Shown: positions 52,768-62,798 of the stretch, one piece after another | How positions within the stretch are numbered: the first letter of the stretch is position 1 | Layout of the letters: each line of letters begins with the position of its first letter | Assembly: GCA_904063045.1 (NCBI GenBank) | Contig: CAJFCJ010000001.1 | Coordinates: forward strand, 1,178,001-1,242,000 | Length of the DNA stretch: 64,000 nucleotides | Source of the DNA: Dimorphilus gyrociliatus | Lineage: Eukaryota; Animalia; Annelida | Reading direction: 5' to 3' | The notes under the pieces: generated by a model | Databases searched by the model: none | Seen by the model: the letters and a program-made list of their open reading frames with translations, nothing else | What the model was told of the DNA's origin: nothing | Program-made: the position numbers and the translations under genes

Positions 52768-53272
52768 CTACGGGTACTATTGAATTATTTACTTACAGCA
52801 TCTAAATTTCTTATATATTTAATACTCCTGGATCGAAGTTCTATTTCAAATACTTTTTCAGTGTTCTTCTCTTGAGCATCCTTCAGCTATTTTTTTTAAA
52901 TTACATTTTCATTAACTAATTAACTAATTAAAGAAATTGTATGCAAATGTGTATACAACTGAATTAAGTACTTACTATCTCGGTCACGTTAATTTCATTC
53001 GTTGTTTCAGTTCTTTCTTCGCATTCAGTATTTTGAGTAGTATCTAGATTTATAAATTTTATATCATCTTCTGTATTGTTATCTGTTGCTAAAATAGGTT
53101 CTTGTTGTTTTTTTTGTTGTTTATCCTTGCCAATTTTATTAATGGGCCCTTTTTTAATATTTTTCGTGGCGGATTTTATTCTTGGTCTCGTTTCTGGGTT
53201 TATAGGTGAAACGTAGTTCGTACGGGTCTTTGAACTTCTAAGAGGTTTTAATTGAACATTGGCCATCTTCAT
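50557..53272 (-). CDS. SDS22-like leucine-rich-repeat protein, 14 exons
   Basis: About 10 LxxLxLxxNxI repeats spread over small exons, an LRRcap (NPC...Y...LHILDG), then RPLSAA, a coiled coil, and the C-terminal RSRLAEARQFAAEHF. Confidence 0.8.
52735..52762. repeat. (TA)n microsatellite in an LRR gene intron
   Basis: Perfect TA run. Similar runs occur at ~23088-23125, ~32268-32287 and ~63798-63848. Confidence 0.85.
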
Positions 53273-53711
53273 GAAAAAAAGAGACAGTTAAAATTTATCG
53301 AATGTTATTTAGTTTGAAAGACTAACAATAGAGTAAATATTAGAACACTCTAGTGTTTTGTTGATAAAATCATTCTTCTATTTCTTCTTTAAGAGTTTAG
53401 TTGTACAGATTGTAATAATCGAAACTGTCAAGAAAATAAATCAATTAACCTTTACAGGTTTTTTTCTTCAATTGACAAGTTAATTACACAACAGCGGGGT
53501 CACACTTTTATTAGATTTGTCAAATTATAATTAAACATACTAAATTTATTCAAACAAAAATAAATCATTTTAAAATTGTTTTTGATCAAAGAGTCAATGT
53601 TTTAATAACTTACTCGTATATTATTTTATTCGAGATATATTACAAGTGTAATTTAGAGAGTAAACTAAACTTTAATCGGTGATATCATTCATAATCTCTC
53701 ATGCTATTTTA

Positions 53712-53743
53712 TGACGTCACCGGAAATATCTTTCCTTGGAAAC
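53712..53743. promoter_or_regulatory. CRE (TGACGTCA), ETS-like CCGGAAAT and X-box-like (CTTTCCTTGGAAAC) cluster
   Basis: Three adjacent motifs in the divergent intergenic region between the LRR gene and the GNAT-PARP gene. Confidence 0.5.
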
Positions 53744-53884
53744 AGGGCGATTCAGACGATGTGAGACAGTCGATACGATTTAGTTCGAAATGCATAGTCA
53801 TAATCGATATGATATATCGTTTTATCGGGAAGAAATCAATCACAGTAAGCTTTTAATTTACCGCGGTTCTAGTTTGTTTACATC

Positions 53885-56755
53885 ATGGCAGACGAAAAAT
53901 ACTGTTCGAAAAGCCTCTCGTCTCCTATAATTTTCGAATCCAAGGATGGACAAAAAATAACTTTAACCCCCTACCTCATCAATTTTAAACTGTCCAAATT
54001 AGATGCAAAGTTGCATAAAGAAAGCTATGTTACTCAAGGGGTTTTGTCAAATGATCTGCTACATTCCGTTGCCGCACTATATAGCGTCAGTCTTCCAGAA
54101 ATGTCACCCGACACGATTTATGATCATCTATCAGATCACGCTAAAACCATCGTCTTAATTCAAGACGAAAATGGTAATACATAACACTTTTCACCGTAAT
54201 AAATAACTTTTTCTGCTATTAAAAACTATATACTTTGCAGAAGTCGTCCAAAGCTACCCTAAACAGATTACTGCAGAAGAAGAACCAAAACCTGATTTAT
54301 CTAACCTAAAGCCAAGCGATGATAAAGACACCTGCCCCGTTTATGAATCTCCTCCAAACTTTTTCAAAGAAGTTTTTTCCGATAAAGAAAGCGAAGAAGA
54401 AGAAGAAGAGACAGAAGAAGATGAAGAAGACGAAGAAGATTTCTCTGAAGGATGTAATAAATTTATAAGAGATGTCGTACACAGAAGACAGAATAGAAGG
54501 GCAGAAATGCAGACAAAGGGAAATGAAAACTTTGGTATAGAAACTCGAATTGCCGCCGCGCTAACCTTCAATAAAACATACATGTAAGCACTCGTCTGTC
54601 TCATAATGTTTCAAGGATAACTGTATTCTTCTGTTCCAATAGCAATAAGGGTCAAGAAACTGTACATCATCTCAAATATCTAGCCACCAGATTGAAATAT
54701 CGCAAGAAATTTGGTATTGGGAAATATCTATTGAATGTATGAAATATTAAAATGCCGTATTCATAATAGTTTTTTTTAAATAGGGTTGATTATTTAACTA
54801 AACCAACAGTTAATTAAAGACAATACTATTTGCGGAAAGTATGATGCGATTGTAGTACACGCCGATAATGATGCAACAGGTTTTTTCTTACGTTATGGCT
54901 TTACAGATGACGTCATTTTAAATAGTCGATTTAAGTGAGTTTTATTAAAATAAAGTAAAAAAAAAAAGAGAATATTTTAACTTTGAACACTTTTAATTAT
55001 TCAGAGATTTGATGGAGCAATTTACAAACTGTACATTAATGAGCTATTTACCATCGTTTACCGGTAATTACTTATTTCTAAGCAATTAAGTACTATACCT
55101 CTAGGACTCCATTATTTTTAGATGATAATCGGTCCGAACCAGGCATGGATTTAGCTGATATGGACAGGCAAATAAATAAATGGCGATCTAAGGCTGTTGA
55201 ACATTTTCAAGAGCAAAGTGTTTTGTATAAAAGAATGCAAAGAGAAATTATTCACTTAAAAGCAATAACTACATCTCAGCAAACCATAATAAATCAATTA
55301 CAGACCAAATGCGATTTATTGTTAAAGCAAAAACTAGATATTGGTAAGCCTATGTAAAAACATTTTTCTCATACTTACATAAGATAAACACTAATTTTAA
55401 GGACATCCTCAATCGACCTTCTGTTTATAGCAGTTGTAAATATAACGTAGGCCAAAGTATATCTAGTGCTTCTATATAGGACAGTGACTAACTATCTTTG
55501 TTATAAACTGATAAAGCTTCTTTATAAAATTATTCATAATGTCTTTCCAGAACGTGAATATTTGCAGTATCGAATCAAAGCGGATCGATCAGATTCGGAT
55601 TTTGATGATGAAGATACAAGGAATTTAATAAAAGCTCTGGAGAAATACGAGGTAAAATGGAATTTGGATGACGACGAAGAGATGTACTGTCATGGAAAAG
55701 ATTCTGAGGAATTTTACGCTATCAGCTTGAAATTTAGAAAAAGTTTAGAAGCTGATCCTGAATTTTCTTTAGAAGATTACCAAGTACAATCCATTTCTAA
55801 GGTAAGCCTATAAAAATATGCAGTAAGTTTATAAAACACACGTGACTAAGTCACATAGGCTGTTTTAACACACAGAAATTTTTTTACTATCTGGTTATAT
55901 TTCATCTTAAAATGTTGTTTACTTCTCTTTAACAAAATGAGATCAGTAAAGCTGACATAATTAAAAGTCATGTGACATGAAATATGTATAAGTGAACCTT
56001 GATCTGATGTTGTCAGTTAATTTTTTATGCATAATATTTTCATTTCAGGCACAGATAAAAGATAATAGTGATAAGGGTATAGAAGCTTATTTGGTCGGAT
56101 CTACGAAAAATTCTAGTAGAATCCTGTCAGACGGTTTCATTGAAGAAGGTGAAATATAATATTAATACAGTATTCATTAATAATATTAAACGTCAAGGAG
56201 CATTCAGGTAAAAAGTAAAATGAATTCTTAAAGTAATTTAATAATGTTCCTTTGCACATAACATCAATTTCTACAGACTTATAAGTATTAATGATTAAGC
56301 CCAAACAACAAATAATGATTCTTATTTAAGCACATTACACAATATTCAAAAATGTTACTCATTTTCTTTGTATCAAATAGATTATACAGAATCTCAGGAT
56401 GGCAAAGCTCTACTCTTTACGAAATACCCATCGGTAGCCATTAAATCATCAAACCATGTAAGCCTATATATTTTTTCCTTCTTTAATTAGGGAATTTATA
56501 ACACTTAGTATTAGCACAAAAATACATTATCTTTCAGAATTCGTCCCAAGTGATATTTGCTAGAATATCAGATAATTGTTACAAGGAAATTTACAATGAG
56601 GTGATCTTTAAATAGATTAATGAATACGCAGTTATAAATCAATTTACGTAATATTTTTACAGCCGAACCAATCAGTTGGAAAAACGAAATACTTTGCTGT
56701 TTTCGACTTTAAATATGCTACACCTATTGCTTTAATAAAATTTGAAAAGAAATAA
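53885..56755 (+). CDS. GCN5-like acetyltransferase + coiled coil + degenerate PARP-like domain fusion protein, ~10 exons
   Basis: SVSLPEMSPDTI..KTIVLI / AAALTF..KYLAT..RKKFGIGKYLL..VVHADNDATGFFLRYGF..NCTLM (GCN5-like). C-terminal YLVGST..ILSDGF..GKALLFT..VIFARI..YFAVFD..PIALIKF (PARP-like). All exons join in frame. Confidence 0.75.
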
Positions 56756-56973
56756 ATATCACTATATTTGTAGTCTTTTTGAAAACTACCTTTTTACAAT
56801 CATCTTTAACACTTTTCTAACAGAATTAGAATTATTTGTTTCGATGAGATTGCGATTCATTTTTATTAATTAAATAATTAGTCGAAATTGTTGTAAAATA
56901 TGCACATAAATGCAAGTTTATTAACAAAAATCGATAAATATTCCAAGCTTATTCGATCAGCTGATATATAACA

Positions 56974-56987
56974 GCGCCGTCTGGTAG
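56974..56987 (-). promoter_or_regulatory. CTCF-like site upstream of the RING-CH gene
   Basis: CTACCAGACGGCGC at the start of a CpG-rich stretch preceding the 5' UTR. Confidence 0.45.
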
Positions 56988-57427
56988 CAATTTTCGCTGA
57001 GGGCGTTGCGAGGCGACGTAGACGAATAAGGACGGCAATACACGTCAAGTCGACGCCGCAAGATTTTAATAAATGCCAGGAAATTGAAGAAGAACTGTTC
57101 GGCTCAAGTTTTGTGAAGAGATCGCAGTTTAATCATCACTGACAATCGAAATATAGGTGACTGATTAGATAAAGAGCTGCAAGCGAAAAAAATCGGTGTA
57201 ACCGGTTTATAACCGGTAAGAAAATATTTTTTCTATGTATTTTGTCTCTATAGTTGATAAGGGTAGATATGGTTAAAACTGTTTAACTACAGACTGTAAA
57301 CAAGATAACTACAATTGCAACAAGAGAGGATCGTTCTTAATATTTTTTGTGTAGACTGTTTAAATTGACCGGTAACCGACTTCTAAGGTTCGTTCATGAG
57401 ATAAGATATTTCACTACGTACAGGCTA

Positions 57428-58096
57428 ATGATGGCGAACGTTCAAGAAGAAGAGTGTAAAAATCCTCTTGTAGAGCCTATACCAGTTATCGGGCATCCCC
57501 CACCAATATACGACGAAGATAAAGTTTCTGTTCAATCGATCGCCTATTGCCGTATATGTTTTTCAGGCGATGAACCAAATGATGTACTTATATCGCCTTG
57601 CCGATGTTCCGGCTCAATGGGATACATTCACAGATCTTGCCTGACAAGATGGTTGGAACAAAAGAAAGGCTCAAGGGGCAGTGCAAAATGTGAACTCTGT
57701 CGGTTTGTGTTCCACAGGCATAAAAAATTTAAGGTAAAATCCTGCCGGATGCCACCCGTCTCTCGTCGGGATAAGATTCTTCACACCGTCTTCGTTATAA
57801 ACCTTCTCATTATGATTGGCTGTGCAGTTGCAACGATCTTGTGTTTCCTGGCTGATAGGGAAAGAGTTCCACCAAAACGACGGCAGGATAAATCGAAATT
57901 GACTCGCGAGGAGATTATAACATTAACTTGCGGGGTACTCTTCTTCGTCTCTTTTTTTGTTGCCATGGCCGTTCAGATTAAAGCGAAGAATACGATCTAT
58001 CAATTATTTGTTAAATTTATCGTCCACAATATGGAATGGCAAATCGACGAGTATGATAAAAGTAAGGATCGGACATACCCGCCACAGTTCGTCTAA
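57428..58096 (+). CDS. MARCH-family RING-CH membrane E3 ubiquitin ligase
   Basis: CRIC...SPCRCSGSMGYIHRSCLTRW...CELC (C4HC3) followed by two TM helices. An acceptor (cag) lies just upstream of the ATG. Confidence 0.88.
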   Translation: MMANVQEEECKNPLVEPIPVIGHPPPIYDEDKVSVQSIAYCRICFSGDEPNDVLISPCRCSGSMGYIHRSCLTRWLEQKKGSRGSAKCELCRFVFHRHKKFKVKSCRMPPVSRRDKILHTVFVINLLIMIGCAVATILCFLADRERVPPKRRQDKSKLTREEIITLTCGVLFFVSFFVAMAVQIKAKNTIYQLFVKFIVHNMEWQIDEYDKSKDRTYPPQFV

Positions 58097-58433: not shown

Positions 58434-59570
58434 ATGGATTTGAAAAGGAAAGCCGACGATTCCAGCGCATTAATCGCTGTTAAGAAAACTAGAACTGACT
58501 TAGTTGTTTCTGGAAATGATCGGAAGGCTCTTATCGAAGGCGTGAGTAAAATAATACGTACAGTTTCTTTGATTTCGCTAAATTCTTTTTTTTCGTAGAA
58601 ACCTAAAGCACCGGCTAGAACCTCCAACCTCCAATCGCCTATTATGCTCTTAACTGGCCATACTGGAGAAGTTTTTTGTTCTAAAATATCACCTGATGGT
58701 GATATTATTGCTTCTGCTGGATACGATCGGGCTATCTATCTGTGGGAAGTCTACGGGGATTGTGATAACCTGGCTGTGATTCGGGGCCACACTGGACCCA
58801 TTATAGATTTACAATTTTCTCCCGATGGCGAATATTTGCATACTTGCTCGACAGATAAGATGGTTTGTACTTGGGATATAGAAACTTGTACACGAATAAA
58901 GAAATTGAAAGGTCATACGACATATGTTAATTCGGTTTGCCCGGCTAGGAGAGGACCTCAAATTATTGTTTCGGGTTCTGATGATGGAACTGTTAAAGTT
59001 TGGGACGTTAGAAGAAAAGCTGCAGTTCACACTTTACAATCTGGATATCAAGTATTGTCAGTCGCTTTCTCTGATACCTCTGAACTTGTTTATTCAGGAG
59101 GAATAGATAATGATATCAAGGTTTGGGATTTACGTAAAGCTTCTAGCAACCCTCAGACTGCTCTGCAGCAACGTTTGAGCGGTCATGTTGACTCAGTGAC
59201 TGGTCTCTGCGTCAGTCCGGATGGTTCTTATCTTTTATCCAATTCTATGGATCAAACAATTAAAGTATGGGACATTAGACCATATGCTCCAACCGACAGG
59301 TGTATTAAAGTTTTCACTGGCCATCAACATACTTACGAAAAAAATTTATTGCGTTGCTGTTGGTCATATGATGGGCATAAAGTTAGCGCTGGATCGGGTG
59401 ATCGCTTTCTGCATATTTGGGACGTAAACTCTAGGAAACTTCTTTACAAACTGCCCGGACATACAGGAAGCGTCAATGACACTCACTTTCATCCAACAGA
59501 GCCGATCATCGTGAGCGGATCAAGTGATAAAACCCTCTATTTAGGAGAGATAGAACAGCCCCGTATGTAA
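58434..59570 (+). CDS. SNRNP40: U5 snRNP 40 kDa WD40 protein, 2 exons
   Basis: RTSNLQSPIMLLTGHTGEV, VSGSDDGTVKVWD, HTYEKNLLRCCWS and LYKLPGHTGSVN. Confidence 0.96.
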
Positions 59571-59973: not shown

Positions 59974-62798
59974 TTACCTGCTTAGAAAATCTTTATCATT
60001 TTCACTTAGCGGCGTCGTCTTATTTCTGGAGTACTTCAGGGAGAGTACGTCGCTAACTTCATCGAAAATTCTGAGGGCTTCATCGAGCATTTCTCTAGTG
60101 TGAGCGGCTGATAGACAAATTCTGGCTCTGGATTCAATAATTGGAGTGGCTGGAAAACCAACAACAACAACAGCAAGCCCTCTTGATAAACATTCTCTCG
60201 AAAATGCGGCAATTTTTGATGGGCAATAGAGTAATATAGGTACGACAGGAGAATCTGAATTTCCATAGACAATTAATCCGAGTTCAGCTAGTCGCCTTCT
60301 CAGATATCTGGTATTATAAGCAATTTGAGCCAATCTTCTTGCACCTTCTTTGGTTCCATCCAAACCCATTATAATGCGCATAGAAGTTAGTACTTGTTGA
60401 GCGATGGGAGGTGGCATAGACGTAGCATATGTAGCGGCATGCGAATTACGCTTCAGATGATTAATGATTTGCTTATTACCTAAAAATAAAAAAAAAGTTG
60501 TTAGAGTACCGGAAAGAATAAGAGAATTTTCTAGCTATTTCATACATGGAAATAATTGATAAATGTGAAAAAATCAATCAAAAACAAATGTTCTAAACAT
60601 AGCTGAATAATAGTAATAATGACAATGAATAGTCATTTCTTAAAAAATGTTTTGTTTTCAATCGATATGAATTCCTATTAAACATAAACTTCCGTTTTAT
60701 TAACGTTTACAAATGATAGTAATGCTAGTACTTTTTAAAAAGAATTAATGAATATTCACTATGAACAATGAATTAGTACTGTTTCAATAATAAACAGTAA
60801 TTATGGAAAAAAAATCAATATAAGGCATATTGTGTTGTACAAATATTGAAAATGTTCTATTTTTTATAACCTTATTGAATACCTTAAGTCAAGCTTCTTA
60901 TCAAGCTGTTTTTTTTTATATATATATCTAACGTTATTCGTGTTTCCATTGTTCCATTTTAACATCAATTCATATTGCTTTTGATGACAATAATATCGTT
61001 ATATTAGTATCTATCTAATCAGAATAATTTTTTGTCCGTATTTCATTATTAAATAATTATTAATGTACATTAGTTAGTCACCAATTTGAATAGGTAAATA
61101 AATTTTAACTGACTATTATTTAATTGATTTTAGGTGTTTGTTATATAATTTTAGCGAAAAAATGGCTATAAGACTTTTAAATATTCACTTCAAAATGTTA
61201 AATATAAACAGCTGGCGTAAAATAAAAATATGATATATAGAAATTATGCAGCCGTATGAAAATATAGAAGAATAGTCAATGAATTGCATTTTATTGCCTT
61301 TCAATGAAAAGGGGTAGTTTTATCCTAGATATGAGTTATTACGCTTTAAGATTTTCTAATATTATAAAAGTTATACTCATAAATACCTGCGATATATCCT
61401 CCCATTGCTCCAAAACTTTTTGTGAATGTACCCATCATAACGTCCACATCTTTTGCGTTACAATTCCAATAGTCTACAACCCCTTTTCCATTCGGTCCCA
61501 AAGCGCCAATACTGTGAGCTTCATCCAAATATAGATATGCTTTATATTTCTTTTTTAGTCTGATGAGTTCTGGTAAATTAACAATAGATCCTTCCATTGA
61601 ATATATGCCTTCGAATAATATCAGTATTTTTTTCCAAGGCCGATGAGTCTTAGGCTGACCGTAGACGACAGCATCTTTTAATTTTCTTTCTAGATCTTTA
61701 GTGTTGTTGTGTTTAAAAGTCATAATTGTGGCTCCAGAAATCTTCGCCCCGACGACTAAAGAGGAGTGATTTAGTTGATCACTCAAAATTAAAGATCCTT
61801 TTCCTACTAAAGCGGGTATGTTTAAGGCATTTGTAGCAAACCCCATGGCAAATACCATAGCTGATTCTTGTCCAACAAACTCGGCAACTAATTGTTCTAA
61901 TTCTCTGTGAATTTCTGAATTTCCTAGCTCCCTTCTCGATGCTGCAATACTACACCCATACTTTTCAATTGCATTTTTTGATTCTTGTGCACAGGGTCCA
62001 GAGTTTTCAGCAAAACCAAGGTAATTGTAGGACCCCATATTCATGCACTTGGTTTTCTTTCCAGTGAGTGTGAAGGTCCATCCCTGGTCAGATGTTTCTC
62101 TATCGATAAGATCGACATAGGCGGCGGGTACTGATGCGATGGGTCTGTTCCAACAATCTCTTATTCTTCTGTATAGGTTTCTTGTGTAGAATGCTTCAAA
62201 GCTATTGTACAGTGGTACCCATCCTGGGATTATAGGCTCGGCGAAGGGAATTTTCTCAAGTCCAAGTCTTCTCAACAGGTCTCTCATATGACCAAATATT
62301 ATGAGTACGCCATATCCCAAATATGTTAGGACTGCAACTGGCAACGGGGTTTCTTCAAAGCTTTCATGGAACGTTTCAAGTATAGCTTTATTTTGATTAG
62401 TGCCATTTTCTGCCTGATGAGTAATAAAAAGTAACACTTCAGGTCATCTGATTACAATCAACTATTTTCATAAAGAAAAGAAGATATTTAAAAGTCCGAT
62501 TTAACAATATAATTAATCAAAAACAGATTTTTAAATTGAAAAACTTAAAATTTGGCGACACTTCTAAAGCGTAAATATTTTCAGCTATGTTTTGGTAACT
62601 AATAAACAATGGTATTTCAACATTAATAACGTAATACTGTTATAAATACAATTTCTGTCTCGTCGGTTTTAATCTTACCTGTCTTGCATGAGTTCCATTT
62701 ACAGTCTTTTGAGTCTTTTCAGCATGTACGTGACCATTCGTTTTAGATTTTGTGGAAAATTGAGTTGTAGAATTATCCCCACCCTTGGTCGCCGCCAT
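59974..62798 (-). CDS. SPTLC2: Serine palmitoyltransferase 2 (LCB2), 3 exons
   Basis: [49 protein letters not shown], the PLP-lysine motif GTFTKSFG, and [20 protein letters not shown]. Confidence 0.95.

Follow-up and report, generated by a model that had tools for sequence, protein, structure and literature searches.

A diverged annelid member of an animal protein family that joins a GCN5-type acetyltransferase domain to a PARP-like domain

GCN5-type enzymes acetylate proteins and PARPs ADP-ribosylate them; both are major routes of protein marking, and both depend on central metabolites, acetyl-CoA and NAD+, respectively. Known PARPs carry His, Gln or Tyr at the first position of their catalytic triad, and members of the fold that are inactive have diverged triads, such as Y-Y-V in PARP13/ZC3HAV1 and Q-Y-T in PARP9. 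Here we describe a gene in a 64,000-nucleotide (nt) stretch of the annelid Dimorphilus gyrociliatus (GenBank assembly GCA_904063045.1, contig CAJFCJ010000001.1, positions 1,178,001 to 1,242,000 of the forward strand; this whole stretch is called the window below), whose predicted product combines a GCN5-type domain, a probable coiled coil and a PARP-like domain, an arrangement to which an earlier note made from the letters of the window had drawn attention. Among solved structures, GCN5/PCAF (KAT2A/KAT2B) provides the best match in both sequence and fold to the N-terminal half of the family to which we assign the gene, and the match extends over the entire histone acetyltransferase (HAT) domain; motifs A and B are included, as is the C-terminal ...GxTLM.. 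segment. Compared to GCN5/PCAF, the window protein has this domain split by about 110 residues, carries His for Glu, and has neither the bromodomain nor the PCAF-homology region, whereas a coiled coil and a PARP-like domain are added; it is not a KAT2 orthologue. With regard to the C-terminal half, the family domain passes the Pfam threshold for the catalytic domain of tankyrases and other PARPs (PF00644) and models as a PARP fold. Where PARPs have the NAD+-binding His the family has Cys; in the window copy all three triad residues are replaced, and the domain is shorter. PARP13/ZC3HAV1, PARP9 and TASOR/TEX15 likewise keep the PARP fold without the catalytic triad, presumably for binding or structural purposes, but their partner domains are entirely different, and no GNAT partner is known for them.

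The window is AT-rich eukaryotic DNA (GC about 0.32) with short introns. The region 53700-56900 was translated in three frames and the open pieces were joined at GT..AG sites, which gave a gene at 53885-56755 on the plus strand with 11 exons, 1716 nt and 571 codons plus stop (ATG at 53885, stop at 56753-56755). All of its introns (10/10) have GT..AG ends and consistent phases in this rebuild, which compares with an earlier count of about ten exons and contains every peptide string quoted at that time. Only two public runs, here called X1 and X2, contain this stretch. X2 dates from 2017 and comprises 60 million letters, while X1 is a marine metatranscriptome, recorded as RNA, whose contigs are 90-95% alike and hence come from a relative. 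The contigs of X2 lack the introns exactly at the modelled junctions and therefore derive from spliced RNA. One of them (1655 nt, zero mismatches) covers 53614-55802 and joins exons 1-7 as modelled, including the junction 55343/55551; another (763 nt) crosses the exon 10/11 junction backwards and extends from 56661 to 57215. The E8/E9 and E9/E10 junctions were seen at the depth of the latter contig, and E7/E8 has a short side of 27 letters in X2, below the 31-letter rule, and a side of 39 letters in a contig of the X1 relative. X1 also contains the E6/E7, E8/E9 and E9/E10 junctions. The fusion gene is thus real and expressed, with exons 1-7 on one spliced transcript and the other junctions seen separately.

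The earlier note had assumed a single transcript that does not end before 55551. It is hardly credible that the region instead holds two separate genes, one for an acetyltransferase and one for a small PARP-like protein, or that the joining contig is an artefact. The intron before 55551 is indeed among the longer ones (207 nt), and overlapping transcripts can become fused in Logan contigs, as has happened with the neighbours on either side of this gene. Against this, one mismatch-free contig links exon 6 to exon 7 over a GT..AG intron of the right phase, the same junction is found in the RNA run of a relative, and the orthologues, which come from many phyla, carry the parts in the same order within one protein. 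We rejected the two-gene reading because of the spliced contig across 55343/55551, which bears out the single transcript.

A phmmer search with exon 1 against 1.84 billion representatives gave 17 proteins. Among them were full-length ones of Haliotis asinina, Plakobranchus, Lytechinus and Styela, which without exception bear the names 'uncharacterized' or 'hypothetical'. Starting from the Haliotis protein, a word search gave 68 relatives, most of them with precomputed GNAT and PARP Pfam domains, from molluscs, a brachiopod, nemerteans, annelids, a bryozoan, amphioxus, sea urchins, corals/anemones, horseshoe crabs, one frog and one lamprey; insect, nematode, bird and mammal members were absent among the family matches seen. 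The ESM Atlas holds two clusters with the GNAT and PARP domain pair, commonest in Chordata and Rotifera. When the orthologues were compared to the window by tblastn, collinear matches were obtained for exons 1-6 (E 2e-36) and ordered, weaker ones for exons 7, 8, 9 and 11, and the exon fragments were also collinear on the family alignment (A1), except for exon 10. Three orthologues, namely Haliotis asinina XP_067678316.1 (P0004), Plakobranchus ocellatus GFO03135.1 (P0008) and Paralvinella palmiformis LSH36_713g01000 (P0056), have the same part order as the window protein and match it collinearly over exons 1-9 and 11. They share with it the motifs LLHAV..LYDVSL, VFSD with the acidic tract, DFSKG, R-K-x-G-I-G, VVHADN..FF..GFSDD and FTNCTLM, as well as the coiled coil and the PARP-like domain. 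They differ from it in being 650-710 amino acids (aa) long with a C-Y-E triad and its invariant Glu, where the window protein has 571 aa and V-L-Y, and its PARP domain has about 24 residues fewer than theirs and an identity of at most 25-28%. As judged by these matches, the window gene is a diverged orthologue in a conserved and widespread animal family with the order GNAT, coiled coil, PARP.

No public gene model of the window protein was found in the representative search or the word searches. The literature searched contained no description of a GNAT-PARP fusion, which is no proof of absence since most subscription journals lay outside the search; in the survey of the PARP family by Perina et al. 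(2014; PMC4245714), the words acetyltransferase and GNAT do not occur. The protein is therefore best described as known folds in a conserved combination that is undescribed in the literature searched and that databases carry as automatic annotation only. The earlier statement that no characterised protein has this architecture holds in so far as no paper was found, but a database-listed family of 'uncharacterized protein' entries with automatic GNAT and PARP calls does exist.

A relative is represented by L001, a Logan genomic contig from another sample, which is syntenic with the window in that the same RING-CH, WD40 and aminotransferase neighbours follow the gene. All exons (11/11) are present with the same splice sites, and their lengths are equal save for one in-frame difference of 3 nt in exon 2, while eight of the ten introns differ in length and the proteins are 79% identical overall. 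Nei-Gojobori dN/dS values for this pair, which are rough as dS is about 1 and near saturation, rose from 0.03 in exon 7 through 0.05 in the GNAT core, 0.06 in the coiled coil and 0.08 in exon 1 to 0.14 in exons 8-11.

The GCN5-type half was identified mainly through the family. Pfam recognised Acetyltransf_10 in the Haliotis protein at 4e-9, and the Plakobranchus protein passes the Pfam thresholds for both GNAT and PARP. For the window itself, scanned exon by exon, the sole relevant Pfam match was Acetyltransf_10 on exon 4 (E 0.17), and phmmer against solved structures gave no match for exon 1 and weak GCN5 matches for exon 4 (E 0.15-1). A profile of the N-terminal part of the family (A2) had only GCN5/PCAF at the top of its matches to solved structures (Tetrahymena GCN5 2.9e-9, KAT2A 4e-7, PCAF 9e-6), and it aligned to GCN5 in two pieces, family positions 49-102 with GCN5 14-67 and 207-307 with GCN5 59-158. 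The fold test was made on a model of the Haliotis orthologue, with which exons 1-5 of the window are collinear. The AlphaFold2 model of its N-terminal part had a pLDDT of 80.4 and a disordered insertion, and the top 28 Foldseek matches were all to GCN5/PCAF, 26 of them with a TM-score by target of 0.70-0.79; the exceptions were a longer SAGA-module chain at rank 2 (0.38) and an Ada2/Gcn5 chain at rank 20 (0.53). Since these alignments comprise 250-307 columns, they span the insertion. The window protein is accordingly predicted to contain a GCN5/PCAF-type domain interrupted after strand beta1 by about 110 inserted residues with an acidic tract, in good agreement with the earlier description, which placed an acidic insertion of about 100 aa between beta1 and beta2 of a HAT domain. 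In the family, invariant Phe, Ser-Asp and Gly/Phe positions surround the acidic tract. A bromodomain, which had been reported as missing, had no Pfam match on the window exons or the orthologues.

The acetyl-CoA motif A is intact in the window and nearly invariant in the family (Arg in 51/53 members, the last Gly in 53/53), and the same is true of motif B (A-D-N-x-A-x-x-F-F-x-x-x-G-F). The GNAT core (exons 3-5) is 64% identical to that of the annelid orthologue from Paralvinella. The catalytic Glu of GCN5 (Tetrahymena E122, yeast E173) is replaced by His in the window, as the earlier note had it; alignment of the family profile to 1q2c places the same residue there, and the position is occupied by His in 38, Gln in 10 and Glu in only one of 53 members. 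Because motifs A and B are intact and the region is strongly constrained, the GNAT half is probably an acetyl-CoA-binding, active acetyltransferase, and the His or Gln at the Glu position suggests a base chemistry unlike that of GCN5. One might instead suppose that both halves are dead and that the whole protein is a non-catalytic scaffold, to which the His in the window and the Gln in ten members would lend themselves. We regard this as improbable, given that motifs A and B have been maintained throughout the family and that the dN/dS of the GNAT core is the second-lowest among the regions compared, after that of exon 7; moreover, other GNATs use His or water as the catalytic base.

Between the two domains, the exon 6 segment contains no Pro or Gly over 66 residues, and a heptad count gave 75% hydrophobic a and d positions. 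This long helix is probably a coiled coil, and both the heptad count and its conservation in the family agree with the helical coiled-coil segment previously noticed after the HAT domain.

The assignment of the C-terminal domain likewise proceeds through the orthologues. Pfam PARP matched the Haliotis protein at 1.7e-8 (34.7 bits) and the Plakobranchus protein with 26.9 bits, the cut-off being 26.7. The profile of the C-terminal part of the family (A3) matched tankyrase-1/2 among solved structures at 5e-11, followed by PARP4, PARP10, PARP3 and PARP1/2; ZC3HAV1 chains were among the matches of the family profile (1e-5). The AlphaFold2 model of this part of the Haliotis orthologue had a pLDDT of 91.6 and matched the catalytic domain of tankyrase-2 with E 3e-11 and a TM-score of 0.70. 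When the window exons were aligned to A3 with hhalign, exon 7 matched columns 55-99 (E 1.9e-7, probability 93.7%), exon 8 columns 124-149 (E 6e-4), exon 9 columns 155-173 (E 3e-5) and exon 11 columns 227-246 (E 1.2e-3). Scanned singly, the window exons gave no PARP match in Pfam, although the orthologues do match, and exon 7 gave no usable match in the ESM Atlas. The PARP layout that had been read from exon 7 onwards is hence recovered as ordered matches of the residues encoded at 55664-56755 to a profile that itself matches tankyrase, but not as a direct Pfam match of any exon. A chance resemblance, with a C-terminal region not derived from a PARP at all, is very improbable: the silence of the single-exon Pfam scans and of exon 10 would fit it, but four exons match A3 in the right order, and both the profile and the orthologue model lead to tankyrases.

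The domain is shortened in the window lineage. The segment between the strands that match E-T-V and Q-E-Y of the family has 11 residues, against a family median of 35 and a minimum of 17, so that the PARP-like domain is about 24 residues shorter before exon 11. As for the triad, when A3 is aligned to tankyrase-1, the family's Cys falls on the triad His, and its Tyr and Glu coincide with the Tyr and the catalytic Glu of tankyrase. Among 57 members, 44 read C-Y-E, three sea slugs A-Y-E, two members C-H-E, a bryozoan S-Y-E and a frog G-Y-E. Four members have no PARP-like domain (Styela, a Lytechinus isoform and two horseshoe crabs), and the lamprey and one coral sequence have part of it missing; the Glu at the catalytic position is invariant among the 51 domain-bearing sequences. 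We also observed that Cys stands for the NAD+-binding His in at least 90% of the family members, together with the invariant catalytic Glu. We know of no PARP with Cys at the first triad position. The C-Y-E triad with its invariant Glu suggests a working nucleotide pocket in most members.

In the window copy, the three positions are occupied by Val, Leu and Tyr (Table 1). The V-L-Y triad of the earlier note is thus reproduced by the profile alignments, but what it replaces is the family's own C-Y-E rather than H-Y-E. Ala replaces the second Gly of G-x-G, and Ser stands in the aromatic position that follows S-K-A-A-Q. Because of the V-L-Y triad, the loss of this Gly and aromatic residue and the shortening by about 24 residues, the window copy is most likely without canonical NAD+ binding or ADP-ribose transfer.

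TASOR and TEX15 have a pseudo-PARP domain known as DUF3715, and membership in this group was considered and rejected since the orthologues match PARP and not DUF3715; the latter gave no Pfam match at E up to 1 on nine family proteins (five of them of at least 418 aa) and none at E up to 10 on the window exons.

The PARP-like exons of the window are at most 25% identical to the Paralvinella orthologue. For comparison, identities of this domain to the abalone sequence are 29-59% for 49 of the 50 other family members, and the remaining one, from a congeneric abalone, reaches 91%. As the window value lies below this range, the C-terminal domain has changed fast in this lineage. It is not decaying, however; a dN/dS of about 0.14 and the conservation of all exons in L001 indicate a degenerate domain that is under purifying selection. 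L001 reads Ala-Leu-Tyr at the triad positions, so that the triad was lost before the two taxa separated; since then the domain has been conserved.

This constraint, together with the exon structure kept in the relative, could also mean that, despite the loss of the triad, the C-terminal domain continues to act as a reader that binds a ligand such as ADP-ribose, an NAD+ metabolite or some other nucleotide and regulates the acetyltransferase. A reader had been suggested in the earlier note as well. We consider this rather unlikely, though less so than a protein dead in both halves, given that all pocket residues that could be mapped are changed (V, L and Y in the triad, the second Gly of G-x-G and the aromatic residue) and that some 24 residues are missing from the domain. 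The earlier wording, 'scaffold or reader', fits the PARP-like half only, and there as an inference; the acetyltransferase half retains the acetyl-CoA motif and is probably active.

The reading we favour, and hold to be fairly likely, is that the gene encodes a 571-residue diverged family member in which a GCN5-type acetyltransferase, probably active, is joined to a coiled coil and a non-catalytic PARP-fold module. The GNAT half would bind acetyl-CoA and acetylate a substrate, and the acidic insertion with its VFSD and DFS.G motifs would probably dock basic substrates or regulate access. The coiled coil would probably pair two chains, and the PARP-fold domain of this lineage would be a module with a structural or binding role, joined to the acetyltransferase. 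Several points weigh against this interpretation. The ADP-ribosyltransferase (ART) fold of the window copy is deduced from four collinear exon-level profile matches, and it is the orthologue that was modelled. Exon 10 gave no alignment to A3, and the missing residues include a core strand of tankyrase, so that the fold may be remodelled. The Gln in ten of 53 members bears on the assignment of the catalytic base, the dN/dS values are only approximate owing to the near-saturated dS, and the continuity from exon 7 to exon 8 is less firm than that of the other junctions.

Table 1. Coordinates of the fusion gene, its parts and two downstream neighbours in the window
Feature	Position	Strand	Basis
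Whole coding region	53885..56755	+	splice sites and phases; spliced contigs; conservation of every exon in the syntenic relative L001
Exon 1: N-terminal beta-hairpin region and first half of the GCN5-type domain (helices, strand beta1; LLHSVAALYSVSLPEMSPDTI..KTIVLIQ)	53885..54173	+	phmmer with this exon found the family; family profile aligns to Tetrahymena GCN5 residues 14-67; GCN5/PCAF fold match spans the insertion
Exon 2: beta1-beta2 insertion with conserved VFSD and DFS.G motifs, helix, then start of beta2	54241..54583	+	placement on family alignment A1; in the orthologue model the insertion is low-confidence/disordered and the helix after it confident
Acidic tract, 16 Asp/Glu in 18 residues	54387..54440	+	residue count
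Exons 3-5 (including two introns): GNAT core, motifs A and B, FTNCTLM motif	54643..55063	+	tblastn with orthologues; exon 4 has weak direct matches to Acetyltransf_10 and GCN5 chains
Exon 3	54643-54736	+	gene model
Exon 4	54810-54934	+	gene model
Exon 5	55005-55063	+	gene model
His codon at the GCN5 catalytic Glu position (Tetrahymena GCN5 E122)	54668..54670	+	family-profile alignment to 1q2c
Acetyl-CoA motif A: RKKFGIG (family R-K-x-G-I-G)	54701..54721	+	aligned to the GCN5 Q-V-R-G-Y-G motif via the family profile
Exon 6: long helix, probably coiled coil	55122..55343	+	heptad count; weak Pfam matches to coiled-coil-like families only; conserved in the family
Exon 7: acidic linker; PARP-like domain from 55664, with its first helix and strand	55551..55801	+	hhalign to family C-domain profile A3
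Exon 8: strand that bears the triad His in PARPs; here Val (56094-56096)	56049..56148	+	hhalign to A3, Val opposite the family Cys; family Cys opposite the tankyrase His
Exon 9: region of the G-x-G-x-Y-F motif, which reads GKALLF here; Leu (56413-56415) in place of the triad Tyr	56381..56457	+	hhalign to A3; tblastn E 0.002
Exon 10: presumed strand-turn-strand of the PARP-like domain	56538..56600	+	position only; 17/21 residues kept in the relative
Exon 11: last PARP-like strands; Tyr (56690-56692) at the catalytic Glu position; stop 56753-56755	56663..56755	+	hhalign to A3
Intronless 308-aa WD40 protein	58644-59570	+	downstream neighbour
Aminotransferase class I/II fragment	59974-60417	-	downstream neighbour

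A second splice form of the gene was also observed. In a minor X2 contig, the initial 184 nt of intron 7 are retained and a donor at 55985 is joined to exon 8 (window 55773-56049), with a depth of 32 compared to 534 at the main junction. The retained intron reads Val-Ser-Leu-stop directly after exon 7, and this form would therefore be without the PARP-like core. The Lytechinus protein annotated as 'isoform X2' (P0017) leaves the family alignment at the equivalent point and has no PARP domain. Since both stop at equivalent points, a short form without the PARP domain may be a recurring feature.

With regard to the neighbourhood, the region 53237-53884 contains a head-to-head overlap with a leucine-rich-repeat gene on the minus strand. 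The junction 53424->53614 has CT..AC ends, corresponding to GT..AG on the minus strand, and a loose contig end at 53614 continues into 53237-53266, which codes for MANVQLKPLR, the start of the minus-strand open reading frame (ORF) 52964-53272. The same de Bruijn contig extends into exon 1 of the fusion gene, and the 5' ends of the two genes therefore overlap or share a promoter region. At the other end, the exon 11 contig is unbroken to 57215, where a GT donor leads to acceptors at 57293 or 57425, shortly before the start of an intronless RING-CH (MARCH-type) ORF at 57347-58096. The 3' untranslated region (UTR) of the fusion gene may overlap a 5' UTR exon of the next gene, or there may be read-through, and the contigs fit both; poly(A) signals are located at about 56869 and 57068. 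Met-Ala-Asn-Val-Gln is found at the start of both flanking genes (53252-53266 on the minus strand, 57431-57445 on the plus strand), after Met-Lys in one and after Met in the other, probably by chance. The WD40 and aminotransferase genes stand in the same order in L001, which shows that synteny is conserved.

The family is of interest because one conserved protein joins an acetyltransferase fold to a PARP fold, and its apparent absence from insects, nematodes, birds and mammals may explain why it is unstudied. The invariant Glu, combined with Cys in place of the NAD+-binding His, raises a testable question about the role of the pocket, for which the window copy, having lost the pocket and kept the domain, offers a ready natural control. 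It is conceivable, although we put this forward only tentatively, that the family members form a hitherto undescribed class of bifunctional or metabolite-gated enzymes, in which the activity of a GCN5-type acetyltransferase is coupled to an ART-fold pocket with an unprecedented C-Y-E triad for ADP-ribose transfer or the sensing of NAD+-derived ligands. If so, there would be a direct tie between acetylation and NAD+ chemistry across most animal phyla, amniotes excepted, and the Dimorphilus copy would represent a natural separation-of-function variant whose acetyltransferase works in the absence of the pocket.

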